From positions 62,001-126,000 of the IMG/VR virus record IMGVR_UViG_3300032770_000001: DNA of 64,000 nt; one strand, written 5' to 3'. The translations under genes and the position numbers were made by a program. Positions 25,379 through 62,205 of this stretch are shown here, piece by piece; position 1 is the first letter of the stretch; each line of letters starts with the position of its first letter. Under the pieces are notes generated by a model, which searched no databases, was not told where the DNA came from, and worked only from the letters and a program-made list of their open reading frames with translations.

Positions 25379-26350
25379 ATGAACACACCAGTCATCGATG
25401 CCCTGCTTGCCAGCAACGCTGAAGGTAGCTCCCATTTCACCAAAAAGGATGCCTTTAACCAGCGGATGATTAACAACTTGCACGAGGCAGTTAAGGGTTT
25501 CGAGGGTGCGGTAGCCGCCAAGAAGATTTTCAACACCGAGTACAAGGACGGCTATTCGAGCATCAGCCGTGCGGTCGAGGAAGCGTTCGATGTTCAGAGT
25601 CAAGGTATCGCCGGGGATTTCCGTGCAGTGAGCCAAGGCTGGAATCGAGATAGCGACCCACGCATGTATCTCTGGTATCACCCCTCTTTCGCCAATGTCG
25701 GCGGGGCACTTAAGAAACTCCAGAAGTTCGAGGGCAAGGACAAGCTGGTCGATGCGTTCCTTCCGGTCCTGAAAGAAGCGGTTGCCCTGCTCGATCTCTG
25801 TAAGTCCGCGAAGCCTTTTATTGTCAAAGGTCGCAAGCCGAATCCGAACTATGTGCCGCCTGACATGACCAACACCGGGCACTGCGCGATCTGTGGCAAG
25901 CAACAGAAGTTGACCCCGGCTCAGAAGATGGTCGATCATGGATTTCAGATCAGCAACGGCGTGCACTACTTCGGTGCGCGTGTCGGCCACTGTTTCGGCG
26001 TCGGCTATGCTCCGTATCAGTTGTCGAACGAGGCCAACATCGCATTCAAGGCGTATCTGGAAAAGATGCTCAAGCAGACGCAGAAGAATCTGGCTGAGTT
26101 GAAGTCCGGCACAATCACCAAAGTCAACAGCACGAAGCGCGTGAAGGACGGGTTTAGCTGGAAAGACGAGCCCGTGGTTTATGTCAAGGGCAAAGATGAG
26201 CCCTTTTTCCAGCGTGAATTGGACTCTATGATTGACCGCGCCGAGTGGCAGGAAGATACCATCAAGTCTGATATCAAGCACAACGACGAAAAAATTGCGA
26301 ATTGGACACAGAAGCCACTTCCAGAGGGGCAGGTTCTCGGTATATTCTAG
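25379..26350 (+). CDS. Hypothetical phage protein
   Basis: 323 aa with GHCAICG...HGF...CFG Zn-like motif. Confidence 0.7.
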   Translation: MNTPVIDALLASNAEGSSHFTKKDAFNQRMINNLHEAVKGFEGAVAAKKIFNTEYKDGYSSISRAVEEAFDVQSQGIAGDFRAVSQGWNRDSDPRMYLWYHPSFANVGGALKKLQKFEGKDKLVDAFLPVLKEAVALLDLCKSAKPFIVKGRKPNPNYVPPDMTNTGHCAICGKQQKLTPAQKMVDHGFQISNGVHYFGARVGHCFGVGYAPYQLSNEANIAFKAYLEKMLKQTQKNLAELKSGTITKVNSTKRVKDGFSWKDEPVVYVKGKDEPFFQRELDSMIDRAEWQEDTIKSDIKHNDEKIANWTQKPLPEGQVLGIF

Positions 26351-26353
26351 GGT

Positions 26354-26983
26354 ATGGCATCTGCGGCAGTCGCCCCGGCGCGATTATATCGGGCTCTTAA
26401 CGATAAGGAACTCTCGCGGCGGTTCGCTAGCCGCCCTCTCCGTGCTTTGTTCGACGAAGCATACCACCGTCATCGCGATCAGATTTATCACGTCTGTTAC
26501 AGCTTCGTGCGCAATCAGGACGATGCCGAGGACATGGTCAGCCAGACCTTCCTGAAAGCGTGGAAGGGGCGCAAGGGTTTTCGAGCCGACGCCAAGTTCT
26601 CTACGTGGCTTCATCGAATCGCTGTCAACGAGTGTTTGATGTTCATTCGCAGCAAAAGCGCATTCGGCCACGATGCCCCCACGATCTCGCTGGACGCCGC
26701 AGTACCGAACACTGCCGGGGACGACTTCGTCAAGCCCGATGTTCCTCTCGATCCGCGCACGCTCGACCGCATGGTGGATCACCAGCAGCTACAGCGTGCT
26801 CTGCTCCGGCTGAGTGATGGTCAGCGGGAAGTGTTCGATCTGTATTTCTACAAGCAGCACACCATCGAAGAAATCCAGAAGAAATTAAAGCTGAGTGAGC
26901 CAGCGGTAAAGTCCCGCATTTTCCATGGGCGGCAGAAAGTCCTCCGGGCATTCGGTCGGCTGGATACAGCCGAGATGACCTAA
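26354..26983 (+). CDS. ECF-family RNA polymerase sigma factor
   Basis: Region 2 DAEDMVSQTFLKAW...FSTWLHRIAVNEC; region 4 LSDGQREVF...EIQKKLKLSEPAVKSRIFHGR. Confidence 0.9.
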   Translation: MASAAVAPARLYRALNDKELSRRFASRPLRALFDEAYHRHRDQIYHVCYSFVRNQDDAEDMVSQTFLKAWKGRKGFRADAKFSTWLHRIAVNECLMFIRSKSAFGHDAPTISLDAAVPNTAGDDFVKPDVPLDPRTLDRMVDHQQLQRALLRLSDGQREVFDLYFYKQHTIEEIQKKLKLSEPAVKSRIFHGRQKVLRAFGRLDTAEMT

Positions 26984-27009
26984 GTAACCCCAAAATAATT
27001 TTCAAAATC

Positions 27010-27040
27010 CTACCCTTTTCCCCGACCCGGCTGGTAGAAT
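27010..27040 (+). promoter_or_regulatory. CTACC-N20-TAGAAT promoter at the head of the RNA island
   Basis: CTACCCTTTT at 27010, CTGGTAGAAT at 27031. Confidence 0.6.
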
Positions 27041-27316
27041 GTGAGTGTAAAGGGACACCACGTTACGGGACGCAACGAGAGCCCGAACACGTAACTGGAG
27101 GTTGCTGCGCTTCCAGCGAATTGCCCGAACAGTTAGCGGCGTAACCATCTGCGGGGTGAACAGTATGAGAAACTAATTGCGGTGACCCATAACTGATTCG
27201 AACCAAGAAAAAATTATAGAAATTTCGCTCATGGGCTACGGCCCCGGAAACTACATCAACGGCTCCACCCCTTTCGAGTTGAAAATATCCTAGTCAGGGC
27301 TGGAGCCCCAATTTTT

Positions 27317-27433
27317 CGGCGGGAGCAACGAACGAGGTTCAAGACCTCGATCTTGCGTCTATGACGCGGGGTAGCTTGAATGGGTAGCTTCGGCGGCTGC
27401 GCTGATGCATCAGCGTTGTCCGTGCCCCCTCCG
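27317..27433 (+). ncRNA. Unassigned structured RNA
   Basis: Ends pair (CGGCGGGAGCA...TGCCCCCTCCG); internal arms TTCAAG/CTTGAA, GCGTC-tat-GACGC and CGCTGATGCATCAGCG. Confidence 0.35.
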
Positions 27434-27442
27434 CTTTATCTT

Positions 27443-27652
27443 ATGCACAAAATTCTCCACATCATCGAAGTCTGGTTCTCGGTGGCCGCGCTCTGGATAG
27501 TGTTCAAGGCATGGGCTGGTGGTTGTTTCGAGACGGGGCTGGAAGGCTGGCTTCTGCCGTGGGGCAAACCGAATCCCGGATGGGATGCGCCGACCGAGGA
27601 TGAGATGGAAGCTATGGGGTATGACCGATGGATTATCGAGTTGAAGTTTTAG
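27443..27652 (+). CDS. Small membrane protein
   Basis: MHKILHIIEVWFSVAALWIVFKAWAGG... Confidence 0.45.
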   Translation: MHKILHIIEVWFSVAALWIVFKAWAGGCFETGLEGWLLPWGKPNPGWDAPTEDEMEAMGYDRWIIELKF

Positions 27653-27783
27653 TTGACAACGTGGTGGTGAAGTGCAAGACTGATATTGCGCCGGGTAAGA
27701 TGCCGATAGAGGTCAAGAACCTCTCGCTGTGGGCGCAGTCGAACCGCTACTTGGCGTTCGACATCAAGGTAACAAAGGTTTAG
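27628..27783 (+). CDS. Small hypothetical protein
   Basis: 51 aa, MDYRVEVLVDNVVVKCKTDIAPGK... Confidence 0.4.
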   Translation: MDYRVEVLVDNVVVKCKTDIAPGKMPIEVKNLSLWAQSNRYLAFDIKVTKV

Positions 27784-27807
27784 CCAGCCGGGGCTGGCGT
27801 TTGAGGT

Positions 27808-27926
27808 TGGGGCGGTTCTATTTGCTGAATGAAGTGCCAACCGGGGAGACCCGGACTGAACGATAGATGGAACCACCATCATGATTGTTTTTGGGACTTT
27901 GTTGCAGGTGGTGTGCACCCGCCCCA
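27808..27926 (+). ncRNA. Unassigned structured RNA
   Basis: TGGGGCGG/CCGCCCCA closing stem; CCGGG-GAGA-CCCGG; ACCACC/GGTGGT. Confidence 0.35.
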
Positions 27927-27931
27927 CATTA

Positions 27932-28059
27932 TGCCGTGTCGTCTAGCTTGGTTAGGACGCTCACTGGAGCGAGGCTTCTGCGAAAAGGGCTATCGCTCAG
28001 TCCGAAGTAGTGGAGGTCTGGTGAGTGGACTTGGGTTCAAATCCTAAGCACGGCACCCA
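27932..28059 (+). ncRNA. tRNA-like RNA with a 56-nt branched insert in place of the anticodon loop
   Basis: Acceptor TGCCGTG/CACGGCA plus CCA, D-arm, CTCAC/GTGAG stem, T-loop TTCAAAT. Confidence 0.65.
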
Positions 28060-28162
28060 ATTTCTTAACTACGGTATTAGATAGTGTAAGCCCGGATGTG
28101 ACCGCTGCTCTGCATGTTCTCCGGGCGCTAGGAAAGCTGCCCGGTGGTGTCAGGCCGGGTCA

Positions 28163-28238
28163 GGGCGTGTAGTTCAGTTGGGAGAGCGGTTGCTTTGCAA
28201 GCAACAGGTCATCGGTTCGATCCCGTTCACGTCCACCA
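28163..28238 (+). tRNA. tRNA-Ala(TGC)
   Basis: Cloverleaf, G3:U70, encoded CCA. Confidence 0.95.
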
Positions 28239-28246
28239 AGTTTAGA

Positions 28247-28388
28247 TCGGAGCCGTCATCGAAGATCGGGATGCAGGTGGTTCGAATCCCCGGACGGCGA
28301 TAATCACGCGGAGCGGGTTGAGCCGGGTGAACAACAGGCATGGTGCTGAAATCTACCGGGTTCGATGTCCCGGCTGTTGTGCCGATCA
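28247..28388 (+). ncRNA. Unassigned RNA with two T-loop-like modules
   Basis: GATCGG/CCGATC closure; GGTTCGAATCC inside GCCGTC/GACGGC; CCGGG-TTCGATGT-CCCGG inside ACAACAG/CTGTTGT. Confidence 0.5.
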
Positions 28389-28390
28389 AT

Positions 28391-28564
28391 TTTGAAGCGG
28401 TGACCGTAGTGGGAACGGGTGCGAGGGAAATTCTGCACCAGTCGAAAGACCGTGGAGTGGAGTGAATCTGGTTTGTTCCTGTAGGATTGGGCAACCCTTC
28501 CGGGATTAGGGCAAGCTGGTGACACCAGAAACGCTACCGAAGTACCAGCAGGAATCGCTTCAAA
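28391..28564 (+). ncRNA. Unassigned multi-branched structured RNA (about 175 nt)
   Basis: TTTGAAGCGGT/ATCGCTTCAAA closure; GGGAAC/GTTCCT, GTGC/GCAC, GTC-GAAA-GAC and CTGGTGACACCAG elements. Confidence 0.5.
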
Positions 28565-28570
28565 TTTTTC

Positions 28571-28897
28571 GTGCAGGGTAAACCGCCGTATACGACCAAG
28601 GCTCATTTGAGACGCGGGATAGCGGTTATTGGCAAGGGAGAGCCGGAGAATCGGAACCCGTTTGGAGCCTACTGCACGACTCTTTTTATGCAGACGCCGA
28701 AACTGGTTTACGACTTCATCCGCAGCCGGGTGTACATCGCGACTCGATACACCGAGGACGCAATCGGGCGGATCAAGGTGCTGGAGAAGCACGACGTGAC
28801 CGAGGACTTCGATGGTATTGCGGTCCGGCGCGGATTCTGGGAAGAGACCGAGGTCGGGCAGCAAACCAGAGAGAAATTTGCAGCAGCCGAAAAATAA
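28571..28897 (+). CDS. Hypothetical protein
   Basis: 108-aa ORF filling the gap before the attenuator promoter. Confidence 0.5.
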   Translation: MQGKPPYTTKAHLRRGIAVIGKGEPENRNPFGAYCTTLFMQTPKLVYDFIRSRVYIATRYTEDAIGRIKVLEKHDVTEDFDGIAVRRGFWEETEVGQQTREKFAAAEK

Positions 28898-28900
28898 TTG

Positions 28901-28929
28901 TTGTAAGTTTTCCGAATATCTGGTACTAT
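28901..28929 (+). promoter_or_regulatory. Sigma70-type promoter of the tRNA operon
   Basis: TTGTAA-N17-TACTAT with an extended -10 TG. Confidence 0.75.
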
Positions 28930-28959
28930 GTATTAGACAGTGAATTTCCGAGAGGCATT

Positions 28960-29091
28960 ATGAACTTCAACTTCACCAACGCGGGATGGCAGACGGGCGC
29001 TGTAGGCGCGGTCGCCGCCGTGTGTGAAGCTGAAGGTATTGTCGCCGCAGGAGCGGCGGATAGCGTGCCCTCGGAGGGTTGGGATGATTAA
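28960..29091 (+). CDS. Attenuator leader peptide (43 aa, GNN-codon rich)
   Basis: GAGG RBS; MNFNFTNAGWQTGAVGAVAAVCEAEGIVAAGAADSVPSEGWDD; 27 of 43 codons are GNN. Confidence 0.75.
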   Translation: MNFNFTNAGWQTGAVGAVAAVCEAEGIVAAGAADSVPSEGWDD

Positions 29092-29120
29092 GTAACTCCC
29101 AATCAGAGACTTCCGAGGGC
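29067..29120 (+). promoter_or_regulatory. Antiterminator hairpin (2:3)
   Basis: GCCCTCGGAGG pairs with CTTCCGAGGGC; inner GTTGGGA/TCCCAAT; overlaps the terminator 5' arm. Confidence 0.75.
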
Positions 29121-29148
29121 GACCTGAAAAGGTCGCCTTTAGTTTTTT
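29115..29148 (+). terminator. Intrinsic terminator (3:4) of the attenuator
   Basis: GAGGGCGACCT-GAAA-AGGTCGCCTTT followed by AGTTTTTT. Confidence 0.85.
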
Positions 29149-29159
29149 GCAGTAGATGT

Positions 29160-29239
29160 TGCCCGGTGGAGTGAGTGGCCGAAACCCCTTCTCTTACAAA
29201 GAAGGCTTACCGCTGGTTCGAATCCAGTCCGGGCAACCA
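29160..29239 (+). tRNA. tRNA-Val(TAC), atypical body
   Basis: TGCCCGG/CCGGGCA acceptor, loop CT-TAC-AA, T-loop TTCGAAT, CCA. Confidence 0.85.
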
Positions 29240-29242
29240 GAT

Positions 29243-29319
29243 GCGGGATTAGCTCAGGCTGGTAGAGCGGTTCGTTGCCAACGAACAGGTCGAGGGTTCA
29301 AATCCCTCATCCCGCCCCA
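29243..29319 (+). tRNA. tRNA-Gly(GCC)
   Basis: Cloverleaf, loop TT-GCC-AA, C73, CCA. Confidence 0.92.
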
Positions 29320-29334
29320 AGTTTAGGAGTGAAT

Positions 29335-29550
29335 GTGAAACGCAGCAGACAACGTATCGTGAAGCTGGTGACGACCGTGGAGGTCGAGAAGCATGATTGG
29401 GGATTCCAAGTGAATCACCCGACGTTGGGTCTGGTTGCGACTGCTGACACCGAGGATGAAGCCCTGTCCAAGATGGACAAGATGGTTGTTCGGCAGCTTG
29501 AGTTTGATCTGGCGCACGCGAAAGCGAAGCCAGCAAAGATGGGCCGCTAG
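29335..29550 (+). CDS. HicB-like small protein
   Basis: AGGAG RBS; VEVEKHDWGFQVNHPTLGLVATADTEDEALSKM resembles the HicB N-terminal domain. Confidence 0.55.
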   Translation: MKRSRQRIVKLVTTVEVEKHDWGFQVNHPTLGLVATADTEDEALSKMDKMVVRQLEFDLAHAKAKPAKMGR

Positions 29551-29615
29551 CATAACTGGGAATGCATCGCACTTGCAATGCGAAGGAACGGGTTCGAATC
29601 CCGGCGTGTCCACCA
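29541..29615 (+). tRNA. tRNA-Ala(TGC), divergent (bulged acceptor stem)
   Basis: Loop CT-TGC-AA, G3:U70, CCA. Confidence 0.8.
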
Positions 29616-29632
29616 AGTTCAGATGTACCTGT

Positions 29633-29705
29633 AGTGGCTTAGCCAAGTGGTAAGGCGACCCTCTGCAAAAGGGTTAATGCGCGGGTTCGATTCCCGCAGC
29701 CACGT
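29633..29705 (+). tRNA. tRNA-Cys(GCA), no encoded CCA
   Basis: ACCCT-CTGCAAA-AGGGT; U73; 1:72 mismatch. Confidence 0.8.
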
Positions 29706-29706
29706 C

Positions 29707-29783
29707 GGGGTGTTGGAGGAGTTGGAGTCCTCGCCTCCCTGTCACGGAGGAGATCGCGGGTTCGAGGCCCGTACACCCCGCCA
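29707..29783 (+). tRNA. tRNA-Asp(GTC)
   Basis: Cloverleaf, G73, CCA. Confidence 0.92.
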
Positions 29784-29801
29784 AGTTTGAAGTAGAAGTT
29801 C

Positions 29802-29878
29802 GGTGACGTACCATAATTGGCTAATGGGCTCCCCTGTCACGGGAGAATATGGGGGTTCGAGTCCCCTCGTCACCGCCA
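29802..29878 (+). tRNA. tRNA-Asp(GTC)
   Basis: Cloverleaf, G73, CCA. Confidence 0.92.
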
Positions 29879-29880
29879 AC

Positions 29881-29955
29881 GCATCCGTGGCGAAACGGGA
29901 ACGCGGCGGTCTGCAAAACCGTCATGAGTCGGCTCGACACCGACCGGGTGCTCCA
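29881..29955 (+). tRNA. tRNA-Cys(GCA)
   Basis: Cloverleaf, U73, CCA; atypical T-loop CTCGACA. Confidence 0.88.
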
Positions 29956-29961
29956 AGATTG

Positions 29962-30114
29962 ATGCGGCGAAAAATACAATTCGCGATGCTTTGGATAGCA
30001 AAGCGGTTGAGAGCCGCAGCAGACAGTGTTGAGAAACACGCCCCAGTCGTAAATGAGGGGCGACCGACGCTGGAAGATTTGATGTTAGAGAATCGCCGAG
30101 GCGATTTGAAATAG
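29962..30114 (+). CDS. Small hypothetical protein
   Basis: 50 aa, MRRKIQFAMLWIAKRL... Confidence 0.4.
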   Translation: MRRKIQFAMLWIAKRLRAAADSVEKHAPVVNEGRPTLEDLMLENRRGDLK

Positions 30115-30126
30115 TTCTTTTACAGT

Positions 30127-30500
30127 TTGTGTCAGTGCCGGACGGTCGCGAGTGGCGTTTGTTTCAGCAGGCGTCATTCGAGGAAAGTCGGGGCACCACA
30201 GGATGGCGTACCAGAGAGACACTGGGCTCCGGTGTGCTTGGAAGCGTCGGCGAAAGCCTTCCCAACCAAGTCCCCGGATGACGATTAGAGCAACAGAGAC
30301 GAGTCGGCGTTAGTACCGCAGCACGGGCTGCGGAGGCCGGGTGAAACGGGCAATCTCTACGCGGTGCAAGCGCAAATAGGCCGACAGGAGTGATCCGCTC
30401 CGTTATGAATCGGCGGGTAGCGTGCTTGAGCGTTACGGCGACGTAACGCCTAGAGGAATGATCGTCCTCGACAGAACCCCGCTTACAGGGCTGACACAAA
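30127..30500 (+). ncRNA. rnpB: RNase P RNA (bacterial type A-like)
   Basis: GAGGAAAGTCGGGGC, GGGTGAAACGGGC, TAGAGGAATG and ACAGAACCCCGCTTA signatures; P1 TTTGTGTCAG/CTGACACAAA. Confidence 0.95.
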
Positions 30501-30508
30501 ATTGATGG

Positions 30509-30583
30509 GCGGGTGAGGTATAACTGGTGGTGCCGTGGGCCTCCAACCCACTGAGGCAGGTTCAATTCCTGTCACCCGCTCCA
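30509..30583 (+). tRNA. tRNA-Gly(TCC), atypical (A8, C33)
   Basis: GTGGG-CCTCCAA-CCCAC; U73; CCA. Confidence 0.85.
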
Positions 30584-30584
30584 T

Positions 30585-30661
30585 GCGACCATAGTTCAGT
30601 CTGGTAGAATGCTTCCTTGCCATGGAAGAGGTCGAGGGTTCAAATCCCTCTGGTCGCTCCA
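30585..30661 (+). tRNA. tRNA-Gly(GCC)
   Basis: Cloverleaf, loop TT-GCC-AT, CCA. Confidence 0.95.
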
Positions 30662-30674
30662 GATTTTAGTTGTA

Positions 30675-30726
30675 CGGGTTCGGCTAATCGGAGCCGAGTG
30701 AACGCGAGATACCCTTCTCGCACCCG
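30675..30726 (+). ncRNA. Small three-way-junction RNA element
   Basis: CGGGT/ACCCG enclosing TCGGCT/AGCCGA and GCGAGA/TCTCGC hairpins. Confidence 0.4.
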
Positions 30727-30728
30727 AC

Positions 30729-30804
30729 GCGGGAATAGCTCAGTTGGTAGAGTGCGTGCTTCCCAAGCATGAGGTCGTGGGTTCAAGTCCCATTTCCCGC
30801 TCCA
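30729..30804 (+). tRNA. tRNA-Gly(CCC)
   Basis: Canonical cloverleaf, CCA. Confidence 0.95.
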
Positions 30805-30826
30805 AGTTTTTGTGGTATCATGTAGT

Positions 30827-31228
30827 GTGGCGAATACTACATTCAAAGGTGAGATTGCCGTCCAGAAGGTGATTCTTCGGGCAATCGAAAAAGATGTAAT
30901 CGCAAGCAAGCCTGTCGTTGAAGGTTGCCGTTACGATCTGGTTTTAGATGTTGATGGGTTGAAGAGAACCCAAGTGAAGTATGCTGGACAGACTAGGAAT
31001 GGTGCAATAAAAGTTTCGGTTGCATCACAAGATAGCCGGGGCAAGAAAGGTAAGCGATACGGAGAGCATGAAGTCGATCTCATAATCGCGTATTCTCCGA
31101 TCACGGGAAAGTTTTACAAACTCCCACCCGAAGTCTGGCGAGGGAAAAGGTTGCTTCACCTACGATACGAGCCATCGAAGAACAACCAAAAGATGGGTTG
31201 TTTCGATGCGAGAGATTTTGAGTGGTAA
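30827..31228 (+). CDS. PD-(D/E)XK endonuclease (I-Ssp6803I-like, free-standing)
   Basis: KGEIAV...YDLVLD...QVKY motif; TATCAT hexamer 5 nt before the GTG. Confidence 0.8.
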   Translation: MANTTFKGEIAVQKVILRAIEKDVIASKPVVEGCRYDLVLDVDGLKRTQVKYAGQTRNGAIKVSVASQDSRGKKGKRYGEHEVDLIIAYSPITGKFYKLPPEVWRGKRLLHLRYEPSKNNQKMGCFDARDFEW

Positions 31229-31235
31229 CAAGTTC

Positions 31236-31311
31236 GGGCCTATGGCGCAGTTGGGAGCGCGTTTCCATGGCATGGAAAAGGTCGTGAGTTCGAATCTCAC
31301 TAGGTCCACCA
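31236..31311 (+). tRNA. tRNA-Ala(GGC)
   Basis: G3:U70, A32/U38, CCA. Confidence 0.95.
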
Positions 31312-31314
31312 AGT

Positions 31315-31445
31315 TTGGCGAGCGTCCGAGTTGACGTGCTCGAAGGCTGCAACCTTCCACGTTGACTGGCTCTGGCGAGTAACGGACGGAAACGCGGATC
31401 AGCTTGCAGGCTCCCGTGGAGAGGGGTTCGATTCCTCCTCGTTAA
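31315..31445 (+). ncRNA. tRNA-like RNA with a greatly expanded first arm
   Basis: TTGGCGAG/CTCGTTAA closure; CGTCCG/CGGACG long arm; terminal T-arm GGGG-TTCGATT-CCTC. Confidence 0.5.
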
Positions 31446-31503
31446 ATTTTCAGCGGTTTTATTACGTATTATAAAACCGCGTTTGACTGAAATTTTATAG
31501 CGT

Positions 31504-31580
31504 GGCCCATTCTTCTACGCTGGTTAGGAAAGCGGCCCTTCAAGCCGAAAAAGGGGGATCGTCGCCCCCATGGGCTACCA
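31504..31580 (+). tRNA. tRNA-Glu(TTC), divergent (C33, T-loop ATCGTCG)
   Basis: GGCCCAT/ATGGGCT acceptor, loop CC-TTC-AA, CCA. Confidence 0.75.
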
Positions 31581-31588
31581 AATTTTGA

Positions 31589-31666
31589 GTGCTGTTAGCT
31601 CAGTCTGGTTAGAGCGGTTGCTTCACACGCAACAGGTCGGGGGTTTAAATCCCTCACGGCACACCA
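31589..31666 (+). tRNA. tRNA-Val(CAC)
   Basis: Cloverleaf; T-loop TTTAAAT; CCA. Confidence 0.9.
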
Positions 31667-31674
31667 AGTTCGTT

Positions 31675-31827
31675 ATGGAAAAGTTACTTCGCAAAATCGG
31701 GGAATGGTTGAAAGAGTGGGAGTGCAAGCATCCTTCTCTCGTTTGGTCTCGTCTCATTAAAGTGGGAAAGCGTATGGGACGCATGTGTCCTGATTGCGAA
31801 ATGTTCATTGAAGATTTGGGCGTGTAG
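31675..31827 (+). CDS. Small Zn-binding hypothetical protein
   Basis: 50 aa with CKH...CPDC. Confidence 0.45.
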   Translation: MEKLLRKIGEWLKEWECKHPSLVWSRLIKVGKRMGRMCPDCEMFIEDLGV

Positions 31828-31893
31828 TTCAGTTGGGAGAACGCTTCCCTCGCACGGAAGAGGTCACGAGTTCAACTCTCGTCACGTCCACCA
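31818..31893 (+). tRNA. tRNA-Ala(CGC)
   Basis: G3:U70, CCA. Confidence 0.95.
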
Positions 31894-31897
31894 GTTT

Positions 31898-31958
31898 TAC
31901 GGATGCCTAGAAGTTGGAGGCACGCAATATCAGCGGCGGGTTCGATGTCCGCTCCGTA
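31898..31958 (+). ncRNA. 61-nt mini-cloverleaf tRNA-like RNA
   Basis: TACGGA/TCCGTA; TGCCT/AGGCA; CGC-AATATCA-GCG; GCGGG-TTCGATG-TCCGC. Confidence 0.55.
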
Positions 31959-31959
31959 T

Positions 31960-32035
31960 GCGCGGCTAGCTCAGTGGTTAGAGCACTTGCTTGACACGCA
32001 AGAGGTCGCAGGTTCGAGTCCTGCGCTGCGCACCA
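31960..32035 (+). tRNA. tRNA-Val(GAC)
   Basis: Canonical cloverleaf, CCA. Confidence 0.95.
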
Positions 32036-32040
32036 AGTTT

Positions 32041-32127
32041 GGAAGTGTAGCTCAATTCAGGAGAGCAACATACGACGCCGCGAGGCGCACGTGGCATGTG
32101 GTGCAGTGAGAGGCTCACCCACTTCCA
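32041..32127 (+). ncRNA. tRNA-like RNA lacking an anticodon loop
   Basis: GGAAGTG/CACTTCC acceptor, normal D-arm, extended arm capped by GCC-GCGA-GGC, degenerate T-arm. Confidence 0.55.
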
Positions 32128-32139
32128 AAGTTTTTGTAC

Positions 32140-32287
32140 CGGGTTGGTGGGGGAATATATCGAATACCCCCATGCGGTGTCGATGACGCGGCTGCTATCG
32201 CTAAACGCGGCACTGCTTTGTGACAACCCTGATCGAAGCGGCTGCATAATGCCCCGTCCATAGCAGTGGATGGTCAAAAGCAGCCGT
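32140..32287 (+). ncRNA. Unassigned structured RNA(s)
   Basis: GGGTTG/CAACCC junction with two arms, then a CGGCTGC/GCAGCCG hairpin. Confidence 0.35.
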
Positions 32288-32296
32288 AGAGTTTAC

Positions 32297-32370
32297 GGCC
32301 CTATCTTCTAGTGGCAGGAAACCCGACTCTCAATCGGAAAACGCGAGTTCGATTCTCGCTAGGGCTACCA
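32297..32370 (+). tRNA. tRNA-Glu(CTC)
   Basis: Cloverleaf, loop CT-CTC-AA, CCA. Confidence 0.92.
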
Positions 32371-32595
32371 TAATCTGAACTTCGGCAGGTCGGCAGGACG
32401 CCGAAGATTTCCAAGGCGACGGGCTCTCGTCGCCTTTCTTGCGACCGCAGGACATCCCGTAATCATGGGGGAACACCGGGGCGGGTCACCTTGACCTCCC
32501 GATAGGGCATTCCGCAGGTCACCGTATTTGGCTACCTGACCGCAACCGTAGTAGCAGAGGATGTCTCCGGTGTGGTCTTCGATGAGTTTGCCCAT
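32365..32595 (-). CDS. Small Cys-containing hypothetical protein
   Basis: CYYGCG...CSPMITGCP. Confidence 0.45.
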   Translation of the reverse strand: MGKLIEDHTGDILCYYGCGQVAKYGDLRNALSGGQGDPPRCSPMITGCPAVARKATRARRLGNLRRPADLPKFRLW

Positions 32596-32753
32596 ACTGA
32601 AGGTTTCTGTATTGGGCTATCGTAAAAAGCGGGTTGCTCCGCTTTCCACGCTGTGTATCCCACGCCGAGAAATACAACCACCACTACCGAGATCAACGTG
32701 TTTCGTAGTAAAATGTAGATTCGTCCCAGTTTCATCAGTTCGTTTGAGTCCAT
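32532..32753 (-). CDS. Small membrane protein
   Basis: AGGAGG RBS; one hydrophobic helix. Confidence 0.45.
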   Translation of the reverse strand: MDSNELMKLGRIYILLRNTLISVVVVVFLGVGYTAWKAEQPAFYDSPIQKPSVWANSSKTTPETSSATTVAVR

Positions 32754-32998
32754 GTGAATCCTCCTAGTTGATAAGTCGCTCGGACGGGGCAAAACGCACC
32801 ATCCGTTAAAAATAAATCGCACGACAAGGTCGAAGTGTTACACCCTGTCGAGGATAAGTACGTTGGCGGGGTCATTTTCTCCCGGCTCTTCAGAGATATA
32901 AACGGATGAGACGGGTAAATCTTTGCACGATATTTTCGCTCCACTAGGAATATGCGTGGGCGGGGCAAATCCTTACATTTTCGGGTATTAAATCTACA

Positions 32999-33742
32999 GT
33001 GAAACTCCAACTCATCAGCGATCTGCATACCGAGTTCTACGACATGCCCAAGGTCCACCAGATTCCTCTGGCGAAGGACGTGGACGTGCTCGTGATCGCA
33101 GGTGATCTGATTGTTCCTTCCCGGCAGCATCCCAAGGTGGTGCAGAAGGTCATCCAGTATTGGGCGGACAAGGTGGGACATATCCTGTACGTGTCCGGCA
33201 ACCACGAGTATTACGGTGGTCGTCGAGAAGAGGTCGAGTTCAAGTTGCGGTCGTGGATGCCGAGAAATTTTATCTGGCTCTACAACGATGAGATCACCAT
33301 CAACGGACAGCATTTCTACGGCGGTACGATGTGGTTTAAGCCGGAGCCGTTGAACCAGCTTTACGAGAGCAGTCTGGCGGACTTCTCTGAGATTCATGGC
33401 GATTTCCGCAAGTGGGTGTATGAGGAGAACGCCTTGTTCCGGGAGAATGCCATGAAAGTGGTGACTGAGAATTCGGTCGTGATCTCTCACCATCTGCCGC
33501 ACCCCAGATCAACGCCGTTGCAGTTCATGGGCAGTCCGATCAACCGCTTCTTCGTGTCGGATGAGTCATATCTGATCGAACAGAAACAGCCGAAGCTCTG
33601 GTTGCATGGACACACGCACCACTGGTGCGATTACAATCTTGGCAATACCCGCGTTCTCTGTTACCCTTTCGGTTACCCACATGAGCGACCGAAGCTTCCG
33701 GAGAAACAACAAAATTACGAACCTGAGGTAGTGGAATTATGA
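32999..33742 (+). CDS. Calcineurin-like metallophosphoesterase
   Basis: SDLH, AGD, GNHE, SHH and HGHTH motifs. Confidence 0.9.
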   Translation: MKLQLISDLHTEFYDMPKVHQIPLAKDVDVLVIAGDLIVPSRQHPKVVQKVIQYWADKVGHILYVSGNHEYYGGRREEVEFKLRSWMPRNFIWLYNDEITINGQHFYGGTMWFKPEPLNQLYESSLADFSEIHGDFRKWVYEENALFRENAMKVVTENSVVISHHLPHPRSTPLQFMGSPINRFFVSDESYLIEQKQPKLWLHGHTHHWCDYNLGNTRVLCYPFGYPHERPKLPEKQQNYEPEVVEL

Positions 33743-61886: not shown

Positions 61887-62205
61887 GGATCGCGTCGAAG
61901 AGCGAATCTATAAAAGCCTGTGGCATATCCTCATCGCCGGGGTTGGCGTCTACGAGCTTCGCAATCATAAAACCAAGCTTTCAAAAGTTCTTGCCTGTGG
62001 GCTGATTGCATTCCACATCGATGGGGCTATCGCGGACATTTGCGATAGCAAACCCTTGTCGCGGCGGGTATTAGAAAGTATACGACCGGAGAAACGCGAT
62101 GAGTCCCTCAATAGCACTAAGCTTAAACAGCTTGAAAGACGCCTCGAAAAGTTACGGCAGCAAACCGTACTGGTTCGGCCTCGGCTTCATCCAACTGAAG
62201 CTTAA
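61870..62205 (+). CDS. Hypothetical protein
   Basis: Coupled ORF. Confidence 0.45.
   Translation: MMSSGKDRVEERIYKSLWHILIAGVGVYELRNHKTKLSKVLACGLIAFHIDGAIADICDSKPLSRRVLESIRPEKRDESLNSTKLKQLERRLEKLRQQTVLVRPRLHPTEA

Follow-up and report, generated by a model that had tools for sequence, protein, structure and literature searches.

Bacterial amino-acid operons such as trp, his, leu, thr, ilvGMEDA and pheST are controlled by leader-peptide transcription attenuators, in which a short ORF enriched in regulatory codons has its stop codon next to or inside an antiterminator that competes with an intrinsic terminator. Some of these leaders respond to several amino acids, thr sensing Thr and Ile, and ilv sensing Ile, Val and Leu. 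In mycobacteria, leaderless poly-Cys short ORFs act as Cys-responsive attenuators of protein-coding operons (bioRxiv 10.1101/834739); these are very short ORFs at or near the 5' end of the transcript, without a Shine-Dalgarno sequence, whose codon content sets the expression of downstream genes, and they sense one amino acid. T-box riboswitches follow the same logic, as a shortage of charged tRNA is converted into antitermination of translation-related genes, but a T-box binds uncharged tRNA directly through a specifier codon and needs no ribosome. Phage tRNA clusters and "tRNA array units" (T4, T5, XacN1 with 56 tRNAs, mycobacterial arrays: PMC5852040, PMC5966550, PMC12803027) are known as dense same-strand tRNA genes with encoded CCA and homing-type endonuclease genes in between, in a large phage genome. 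The known arrays are mixed in isotype, and we found no report of leader ORFs, attenuators or sorting in them.

Here we analyzed a stretch of 64,000 nucleotides (the window; positions 62,001 to 126,000 of IMG/VR record IMGVR_UViG_3300032770_000001), which is part of a 455,708-bp phage contig. An earlier note had described 17 tRNA genes between 28163 and 32370 as a full set decoding GNN codons plus Cys. At default settings, ARAGORN identified 16 tRNA genes, all on the + strand within this span, and none elsewhere in the 64 kb. These are Ala TGC x2, GGC and CGC; Val TAC, CAC and GAC; Gly GCC x2, TCC and CCC; Asp GTC x2; Cys GCA x2; and Glu CTC. The Rfam tRNA model reached its gathering score for 15 of them, missing Val-TAC, which has an odd D arm here but scores well in relatives. 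The 17th, Glu-TTC, was found only at the 90% threshold of ARAGORN; it has C at position 33 and an aberrant T loop, and is the positional and sequence counterpart (76% identity) of a well-scoring Glu-TTC in the relative L198 (numbers prefixed with L are our handles for the loci compared). The count is therefore 11 robust GNN anticodons plus one marginal, plus Cys. Identity elements are as expected, with G3:U70 in all Ala, A73 in Val, G73 in Asp, and U73 in 3 of 4 Gly and in Cys no. 2, and CCA is encoded in nearly all. In 86 unrelated phage loci with at least 10 tRNAs (1,649 tRNAs), which are mixed in isotype, 24.7% of tRNAs belong to this set and the longest run is 5, giving P about 2e-10 for 16 of 16. 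The earlier note did not mention several features inside the span, namely an RNase P RNA gene (30128-30502, 167 bits), ORFs, and several tRNA-like fragments; that call is doubtful. The features of the locus are as follows.

27932-28059 (+): cloverleaf-like RNA with a Glu-like D arm, an encoded CCA end and a ~56-nt extended "anticodon arm"; it has no Rfam tRNA hit, was not found by blastn in relatives, and it is uncertain whether it belongs to the array.
28163-28238 (+): tRNA-Ala(TGC) no. 1, upstream of the leader and so probably outside the attenuated unit; placed likewise in L198, L199, L230, L235 and L239.
28901-28929 (+): sigma-70-type promoter of the leader (TTGTAA, 17 nt, TACTAT), preceded by an A-rich stretch.
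28960-29091 (+): leader ORF of 43 codons, with GAGG 5 nt upstream of the ATG.
29042-29059 (+): 7-bp hairpin inside the ORF.
29067-29120 (+): antiterminator, in which the last codons of the ORF (29067-29084) pair with 29097-29120, with the stop codon in the loop.
29115-29148 (+): intrinsic terminator with an 11-bp stem, a 4-nt loop and a T run, ending 11 nt before tRNA-Val(TAC).
29160-29319 (+): tRNA-Val(TAC) at 29160-29239 and tRNA-Gly(GCC) at 29243-29319.
29335-29550 (+): conserved 71-aa ORF whose stop overlaps the 5' end of tRNA-Ala no. 2; 84% DNA identity to L198 and only a weak Pfam hit.
29541-29955 (+): tRNA-Ala(TGC) no. 2, Cys(GCA), Asp(GTC) x2 and Cys(GCA), in the same order in L199.
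30128-30502 (+): RNase P RNA, bacterial class A, directly upstream of tRNA-Gly(TCC).
30509-30804 (+): tRNA-Gly(TCC), Gly(GCC) and Gly(CCC).
30812-31228 (+): PD-(D/E)XK endonuclease ORF inserted in the array (Pfam PF11645, E = 1e-21).
31236-31311 (+): tRNA-Ala(GGC).
31504-31580 (+): degenerate tRNA-Glu(TTC)-like gene, without an Rfam hit at E up to 10.
31589-32370 (+): tRNA-Val(CAC), Ala(CGC), Val(GAC), a tRNA-like piece at 32041-32129, and Glu(CTC).

The RNase P RNA matches the class A model (RF00010) over its full length (167.1 bits against a threshold of 100, model positions 1-367), covering the P1-P4 core. Both P4 strands and the GGGUAG of L15 are kept, including the L15 GGU for CCA-containing substrates, while about 43 nt of the specificity domain are missing. 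Unlike its bacterial counterpart, it is encoded by a phage and sits inside a tRNA array, and it is found at the same position in L198, L199, L164, L230, L234, L235, L238 and L239. The reviews and the huge-phage survey consulted do not mention RNase P. Since RNase P RNA is a cellular hallmark gene, and many short IMG/VR contigs with the P4 motif may be host fragments, the region could in principle be a bacterial tRNA/rnpB locus mis-joined to a phage contig. This possibility is remote, however, as the array lies between phage replication and structural genes, and the same arrangement was found in more than 12 independent viral contigs and in ENA and Logan assemblies. In addition, an independent assembly of the source sample spans 28182-33000 with no differences at even depth, and pieces of the region occur in three other wetland samples.

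No other isotype was found inside the array, and relatives do not mix isotypes. At least 12 related phage contigs, at 30-57% identity in the neighbouring protein, carry an array made only of Val, Ala, Gly, Asp, Glu and Cys tRNAs at the same genomic position and in shuffled order, whereas two more distant ones add Phe and/or Ile (L206, L280). The maintained composition despite the shuffled order indicates selection on membership. It is also possible, though unlikely, that the sorting is a historical by-product of local tandem duplication followed by anticodon change, so that relatives sit side by side and the upstream ORF is incidental. All three or four isoacceptors of Ala, Val and Gly (and of Arg in L202) are present, including rare ones, which suggests duplication with change at position 34; Ala-TGC no. 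1 and Ala-CGC share near-identical 5' halves, and PD-(D/E)XK and HNH endonuclease genes inside arrays could drive rearrangement. However, across isotypes there is no excess similarity within an array (identity of 0.545 within against 0.517 between arrays of one genome, the same spread as in unrelated phages), a crude comparison that points against this reading, and history alone does not explain the leaders whose codon content tracks the array in eight classes (see below).

The earlier note had predicted other arrays elsewhere in the genome, each with its own codon-matched leader, and this is supported. In the same genome, array B (Tyr x2 and Leu x5; L363 13954-16009) and array C (Pro x5, Met x2 and Phe x2; L363 18178 onward and L368) lie about 2.6 kb and 6.9 kb past the right end of the window, each preceded by a short ORF enriched in matching codons. 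Relatives also have such arrays, including two differently sorted ones with different leaders in one 463-kb genome (L164 and L227). The description of the sorting as by genetic-code row, however, holds only for the array of the window, since the others (Tyr/Leu; Pro/Met/Phe; Trp/His/Arg/Asn/Gln/Lys; Ile/Thr; Phe/Asn/Ser/Cys) follow no row or column. The note had also speculated that the CA found in every anticodon loop could reflect a shared nuclease or modification vulnerability. This carries no information, as C36 is what defines a GNN decoder and A37 follows it in these tRNAs. Phage tRNA clusters are considered anti-defence elements in the literature (PMC13096335, PMC12803027), and the array might thus be a constitutive stock of replacement tRNAs against host tRNA-cutting defences that target a shared loop feature, with the terminator only ending an upstream transcript. 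We consider this improbable as an alternative mechanism: other arrays of the clade, such as Tyr/Leu and Pro/Met/Phe, group tRNAs with no shared loop dinucleotide, and there is no promoter in the 11 nt between terminator and tRNA-Val, so the tRNAs depend on read-through. The anti-defence reading is nonetheless compatible, as the trigger, with the attenuation proposed below.

The region upstream of tRNA-Val has the anatomy of an attenuator. The promoter was read from the sequence and its block is conserved in L198, L199 and L202; the exact motif occurs once in the window and once in the contig, although a consensus promoter scan does not list it. The 11-bp intrinsic terminator (29115-29140) is the strongest terminator-like site in 26900-33000, and the 3' strand of the antiterminator (alignment columns 78-88) overlaps the 5' arm of the terminator (columns 81-90), both being supported across 10 diverged sequences. 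With RNAalifold, 8 of 16 predicted consensus pairs (10 in the terminator stem) have compensatory changes. The outer helix of the antiterminator is 87% paired, with 5 of 11 pairs changing on both sides, while slid controls reach at most 50%. When folding was performed with ribosome masks, the full terminator formed with a ribosome at the stop codon, whereas a ribosome stalled 12-14 codons earlier cut it to 4-5 bp. This holds in the window, L198, L229, L230, L235, L238, L243 and L164, and in the unrelated leader classes L018, L186, L237 and L244. Nevertheless, in minimum-energy folds the terminator is not displaced in L202, L047, L015 or the same-genome Tyr/Leu leader, and the same-genome Pro leader has no clear intrinsic terminator. 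The hairpin within the ORF, also seen in L198, L199, L235, L238, L239, L242, L243 and L164, may be a polymerase pause site.

The leader ORF, conserved in position in relatives, is 62-67% GNN/Cys codons: 26 of 42 codons are read by the tRNAs of the array, against 32% in long ORFs (P = 7e-5), and 28 of 42 encode Ala/Val/Gly/Asp/Glu/Cys. Relatives give P from 1e-5 to 9e-3, the weakest being L199, whose array is cut by the contig end. Different arrays have different leaders. In L202/L227, a Lys-His-Asn...Arg-Lys-Gln-Trp-Arg-Asn-Arg-Arg-His block, using CGA, CGG, CGT and CGC once each for four Arg tRNAs, precedes Trp/His/Arg x4/Asn/Gln/Lys tRNAs. L237 has a Thr/Ile leader before Ile and Thr tRNAs, L244 has Glu-Glu-Glu before four Glu tRNAs, and L047 has a Phe/Asn/Ser/Cys leader. 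In the same genome, the leader of the Tyr/Leu array uses CTA, TTG, CTG and CTT for Leu tRNAs TAG, CAA, CAG and GAG, and TAT and TAC for Tyr, and the Pro/Met/Phe array has a Pro-rich leader, but these two are individually weak (P = 0.11 for B; 6 matching codons of 24, z = 2.2, for C). The match is also imperfect, as the Pro/Met/Phe leader has six Thr codons and our prediction that Thr tRNAs would follow failed, Tyr/Leu leaders carry many Ser codons without Ser tRNAs in view, and the L206 leader has a Cys codon but its array has no tRNA-Cys. Codon-diversity tests were mostly not significant. Even so, the true pairing of leaders and arrays is the best of 720 permutations for the six classes found by position alone and of 40,320 for eight classes, and the enrichment matrix is diagonal-dominant. 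Moreover, the L229/L231 array has no tRNA-Cys and its leader has no Cys codon.

It is very unlikely that the short ORF instead encodes a functional small protein, with its Ala/Gly/Val richness reflecting the role of the peptide or the GC-rich hairpins it overlaps. The C-terminal residues (Ser-Glu-Gly-Trp-Asp-Asp and variants) and an N-terminal Met-Asn-x-Asn motif are indeed conserved, and part of the Ala/Val content comes from the in-ORF hairpin. However, the conserved C-terminus coincides with the antiterminator strand, where changes are compensated at the RNA level, the central segment is replaced wholesale in other arrays to match their tRNAs while the promoter and 3' structure stay, and no Pfam family matches.

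With fair confidence, we therefore propose that the cluster is one of several tRNA operons of this phage, each holding the tRNAs for a fixed set of amino acids, and that the array of the window is subject to classical ribosome-mediated transcription attenuation. If the ribosome runs through the leader to its stop codon, it covers the last codons of the ORF, the downstream strand is free to form the terminator, and transcription stops 11 nt before tRNA-Val. If it stalls earlier, at a GNN or Cys codon whose charged tRNA is scarce, the 3' end of the ORF pairs with the 5' arm of the terminator and the polymerase reads into the tRNA genes. Translation of the leader, stalling, read-through and the activity of the RNase P RNA are inferred from sequence only; there is no expression or ribosome data, and no public RNA run holds this phage. 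Only 7 of 20 leaders have a Shine-Dalgarno-like motif, and most start 12-16 nt after the -10 box, so they would have to be translated as near-leaderless mRNAs. As in trp, the terminator is more stable than the antiterminator, so that the order of folding decides the outcome, but no upstream "region 1" pairing with the antiterminator strand was found, so an untranslated leader would read through. In contrast to the attenuators of amino-acid operons, the regulated genes are the tRNAs themselves rather than biosynthetic enzymes or synthetases, the leaders sample five to seven amino acids, and the system is phage-encoded and occurs several times per genome, each copy tuned to another tRNA set. No T-box or other Rfam cis-regulator was found here. 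As stalling reports charged tRNA, the device could not tell loss of tRNA from amino-acid starvation, and in starvation extra tRNA would not help. The RNase P RNA encoded in the array would supply 5' processing of the long precursor. Since the output (tRNAs) relieves the signal (slow decoding), the unit would act as a homeostat for one codon class, and sorting the tRNAs into arrays is what makes such class-specific feedback possible.

By running ARAGORN on the 64-kb window, we obtained 16 tRNA genes, all located on the + strand between 28163 and 32370, namely Ala TGC x2, GGC, CGC; Val TAC, CAC, GAC; Gly GCC x2, TCC, CCC; Asp GTC x2; Cys GCA x2; Glu CTC. Of those, 15 were confirmed by Rfam at its gathering score, the exception being Val-TAC at 29160-29239, which has an unusual D arm. 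The earlier note had counted a 17th gene, Glu-TTC at 31504-31580, but this one appears only at a relaxed ARAGORN threshold and has C33 and an aberrant T loop. As it aligns at 76% to a well-scoring Glu-TTC at the same place in L198, a locus from a related phage, we treat it as a degenerate copy. The identity elements are mostly as expected, with G3:U70 in Ala, A73 in Val, G73 in Asp, and U73 in most Gly and in Cys no. 2, and CCA is encoded in nearly all genes. The note had also speculated that the CA present in the anticodon loops could reflect a shared vulnerability; since this feature is a trivial consequence of C36 and A37, the idea was rejected as uninformative. In addition, the span holds features that the note did not list, namely an RNase P RNA gene, a PD-(D/E)XK endonuclease ORF, a conserved 71-aa ORF and several tRNA-like fragments. 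The elements with defined coordinates in and around the array are the following:

25379-26350, gene of a 323-aa protein, two genes upstream

26354-26983, sigma-70 family factor gene (regions 2 and 4), about 950 bp upstream of the first tRNA-like element of the array (27932)

27030-27270, candidate small RNA between the sigma-factor gene and the array, behind a promoter-like ..GGTAGAAT; it is 79% identical over 81 nt to L198 11128-11208 and recognisable in the related locus L199, where it ends in a terminator, and no Rfam family matches

27932-28059, cloverleaf-like RNA with a 7-bp acceptor stem, a Glu-like D arm, a T arm, an encoded CCA and a ~56-nt extended anticodon arm, with no Rfam tRNA hit and no blastn match in relatives

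28163-32370, + strand, the tRNA array

28245-28300, 28330-28392, 31380-31445, 31894-31959 and 32041-32129, short tRNA-like pieces between the tRNA genes, with GGTTCGA-type T loops and acceptor-like stems, which could be decayed tRNA genes or processing signals

28901-28929, sigma-70-type promoter, about 230 nt upstream of tRNA-Val(TAC)

28960-29091, leader ORF of 43 codons, which reads MNFNFTNAGWQTGAVGAVAAVCEAEGIVAAGAADSVPSEGWDD and has GAGG 5 nt upstream

29067-29084 and 29097-29120, the two strands of the predicted antiterminator, formed by the last codons of the ORF and the downstream sequence, with the stop codon in the loop

29115-29148, intrinsic terminator, an 11-bp stem (29115-29140) plus a T run, ending 11 nt before tRNA-Val(TAC) and the strongest terminator-like site of the region

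29335-29611, conserved 71-aa ORF and tRNA-Ala(TGC) no. 2, the ORF ending inside the 5' end of the tRNA, which has two acceptor-stem mismatches (also present in L198) and the lowest Rfam score of the array (43 bits)

30128-30502, bacterial class A RNase P RNA gene, directly upstream of tRNA-Gly(TCC)

The viral contig, IMGVR_UViG_3300032770_000001, is 455,708 bp long and the genes flanking the array are phage-like, including very large ORFs without family, a weak tail-tube-initiator match, a DnaB-like helicase, a B12-dependent ribonucleotide reductase and a sigma-70 family factor. No close relative was found among GenBank phages. The DNA occurs in wetland metagenomes, in which an independent assembly of the source sample spans 28182-33000 without a difference and at even depth, and near-identical pieces occur in three other samples. 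A mis-join with host DNA is therefore unlikely.

To assess whether such a composition could arise by chance, we considered 86 unrelated phage loci with at least 10 tRNAs (1,649 tRNAs), in which 24.7% of the tRNAs belong to the Ala/Val/Gly/Asp/Glu/Cys set and the longest run is 5, giving P about 2e-10 for 16 of 16. The motif CCAAGTT after tRNAs proved to be common in phages, and the loci served as controls instead. Using the 323-aa protein as a handle, relatives were retrieved from ENA, Logan and IMG/VR. At 30-57% identity in that protein, the loci L198, L199, L229, L230, L231/232, L233/234, L235, L236/238, L239, L242 and L243 all carry, at the same position, an array made only of these six isotypes, as does L164, with the gene order shuffled. 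Two more distant arrays add Ile and Phe (L206) or Phe (L280). Membership is thus kept while order is not, which argues for selection on membership. Exact matches between orthologous tRNAs are only 7-21 nt. An alternative would be that the sorting results from local duplication followed by anticodon change. Although this can account for the isoacceptor series, it cannot account for the grouping of isotypes, given that cross-isotype identity within an array (0.545) is no higher than between arrays of the same genome (0.517) or in controls.

The RNase P RNA gene scores 167.1 bits against a curated threshold of 100 and covers model positions 1-367. It sits at the same position in L198, L199 (cut by the contig end), L164, L230, L234 (267 bits), L235, L238 and L239, and relatives score 138-267 bits. 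The alignment to the Rfam model shows both strands of P4, with one compensated swap, and the GGGUAG of L15, whereas about 43 nt of the specificity domain are missing. The gene is not restricted to this clade. Of 16 loci from contigs over 100 kb, 13 have an RNase P class A match above the curated threshold (108-308 bits; 12 full-length and one cut by the locus end; L294, L326, L278, L321, L316, L257, L280, L299, L263, L323, L296, L322 and L269, from IMG/VR contigs of 100-385 kb), and most of these lie inside tRNA arrays of mixed composition. The ribozyme gene is therefore widespread in very large phage contigs, which would add a core RNA-processing ribozyme to the translation-related functions encoded by huge phages, and it is not mentioned in the reviews and the 2020 huge-phage survey that we examined. 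Other translation-related genes were also found beside or inside arrays. In the same genome, an RF-1/PCRF-like protein of 208 aa sits within the Pro array (L363 19094-19720, L363 being sequence of this genome to the right of the window, and the gene about 8 kb beyond its right end). In the array of the 463-kb relative (L202 798-1232 and 2342-2578), a truncated HisRS-like ORF sits next to the His tRNAs and an IF3 C-terminal domain ORF is also present. Moreover, tRNAs with anticodon CTA (amber suppressors, labelled Pyl by ARAGORN) lie next to Ile/Thr arrays in several relatives (L049, L373, L377, L380, L404), and a GOLLD RNA and a group I intron are found in loci L329 and L299, respectively.

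The leader ORF is conserved in position in more than 12 relatives. Downstream of it, the 3' strand of the predicted antiterminator shares bases (29115-29120) with the 5' arm of the terminator. When the RNA was folded with ribosome masks, the full terminator forms with a ribosome at the stop codon, while with a ribosome stalled 12 or more codons earlier the antiterminator forms and the terminator shrinks to 5 bp. The same result holds in L198, L229, L230, L235, L238, L243 and L164. Across ten diverged sequences, the RNAalifold consensus, whose main helix is the terminator, has compensatory changes at 8 of 16 predicted pairs. The outer helix of the antiterminator is 87% paired, with 5 of 11 pairs changing on both sides, and shifted controls pair at 50% or less. 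L229 is the clearest case, as the ORF strand and the terminator's 3' arm have nearly the same sequence and compete for one partner. However, minimum-energy folds keep the terminator in the leaders of L202, L047 and L015 and in that of the second array of the same genome (leader B, see below), and leader C, preceding the third array, lacks a clear terminator. Classical attenuators also have terminators more stable than their antiterminators, so this is not decisive. In addition, only 7 of 20 leaders have a Shine-Dalgarno-like motif, the rest starting 12-16 nt after the -10 box, and near-leaderless starts must be assumed for those. A conserved TAGAGAC-like motif between the -10 box and the ATG of the leader in many relatives (region 28896-28940 in the window) suggests a fixed transcription start and very short 5' untranslated regions. 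A scan with the promoter motif found it only once in this contig, so the other arrays use diverged promoters. No Rfam T-box hit was obtained in 27000-33000, even at E up to 10. A constitutive anti-defence stock of tRNAs does not explain the terminator 11 nt before the first tRNA, or the leaders, and fits better as the circumstance in which the switch fires.

In the leader of the window, 26 of 42 codons are read by the tRNAs of the array, against 32% in long ORFs (P = 7e-5). Relatives give P from 1e-5 to 9e-3, the weakest being L199, whose array is cut by the contig end. The central block of the leader differs between arrays and follows their content. In L202/L227, the leader MTSMKHNTVARKQWRNRRHDGVGLSSDTEFGK precedes Trp, His x2, Arg x4, Asn, Gln and Lys tRNAs and uses CGA, CGG, CGT and CGC once each. 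In L237, MTMTTQTRITKTTIQTGSGFEFWLGNW precedes Ile and Thr tRNAs, in L244 a Glu-Glu-Glu leader precedes four Glu tRNAs, in L047 a Phe/Asn/Ser/Cys leader precedes such tRNAs, and in L186 and L018 Leu/Ser/Tyr leaders precede class II tRNAs. L164 (a GNN/Cys array with leader and RNase P RNA) and L227 (the basic/amide array) lie in one 463-kb genome, and L018 and L232 in one 187-kb contig. None of the leaders matches a protein family. It is also possible that the ORF encodes a functional micro-protein, but this is unlikely, because the conserved C-terminus is the antiterminator strand and the middle of the peptide is swapped to match each array. The idea that a leader samples every codon of its array was not supported in general, since the diversity test is significant only for L018, L186, L243 and L238.

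The sequence was further extended to the right of the window through IMG/VR, and two more arrays were found in the same genome, about 2.6 kb (array B) and about 6.9 kb (array C) past the window's end. Array B (L363 13954-16009) holds Tyr x2 and Leu GAG, CAG, GAG, TAG, CAA, and array C (L363 18178 onward, continued in the locus L368) holds Pro x5, Met x2 and Phe x2. Array B is preceded by a promoter of the same type, the ORF MNRVFLASLRLYSYLSGGFGERVRWRGW and a 13-bp terminator. The four Leu codons of this ORF (CTA, TTG, CTG, CTT) correspond one to one to the four Leu anticodons present, and both Tyr codons are used. Array C is preceded by MTLMRPTPTFRPCTPTVRGGIGHTL, whose orthologue in locus L391 has five Pro, four Met and one Phe in 21 codons. 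Individually, these two leaders are weak: leader B gives P = 0.11 and leader C has 6 matching codons of 24 (z = 2.2). Leader C also has six Thr codons, but our prediction that Thr tRNAs would follow the Pro tRNAs failed, as Met and Phe follow instead, and Tyr/Leu leaders carry Ser codons without Ser tRNAs in view. Similarly, the joint loss of the Cys codon and tRNA-Cys in L229/L231 is suggestive but contradicted by L206, whose leader has a Cys codon although its array has no tRNA-Cys, so no claim is made, and Phe codons do not track tRNA-Phe. For the six classes found by position alone the true leader-array pairing scores best of all 720 permutations, for eight classes it scores best of 40,320, and the enrichment matrix is diagonal-dominant.

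Taken as ribosome-mediated attenuation, the device would work like the trp, his, thr and ilv attenuators and fulfils their sequence-level criteria. We consider this mechanism likely, although it rests on sequence evidence only; no RNA run holds this phage (the RNA hits share at most 9% of words and are RNase P of other organisms). Leader-peptide attenuation is textbook for amino-acid operons. What is new here is the target, which is the tRNA genes themselves, the breadth, with five to seven amino acids per leader, the multiplicity, with several tuned copies per genome, and the carrier, a phage. Full-text literature searches found nothing comparable, and no report of such attenuation controlling tRNA genes, in cells or in viruses. 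The nearest formal analogue for the near-leaderless variants are the leaderless poly-Cys attenuators of mycobacteria (10.1101/834739).

A further-reaching reading, which we regard as about as likely as not, is that huge phages of this clade split their whole tRNA complement into separately attenuated modules. Each module would measure, through its own leader peptide, how fast its codon class is being decoded in the infected cell, and would switch its tRNA genes on when host tRNAs of that class are scarce, mismatched or destroyed, for example by anticodon nucleases or host shut-off, while the RNase P RNA encoded in the array would make maturation independent of the host. This would be the first case of tRNA genes controlled by leader-peptide attenuation, and of a virus sensing decoding capacity codon class by codon class. 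The roughly 250-nt leader-terminator cassettes should respond to specific codon classes, which could also make them useful as reporters of decoding capacity. If the attenuation reading is right, it explains why the tRNA genes of these phages are sorted and why the sorting is conserved. It would show that phages regulate tRNA supply by feedback rather than simply carrying spare tRNAs, and it would link phage tRNAs to a built-in sensor of host tRNA depletion, which bears on the current debate over codon adaptation versus counter-defence.
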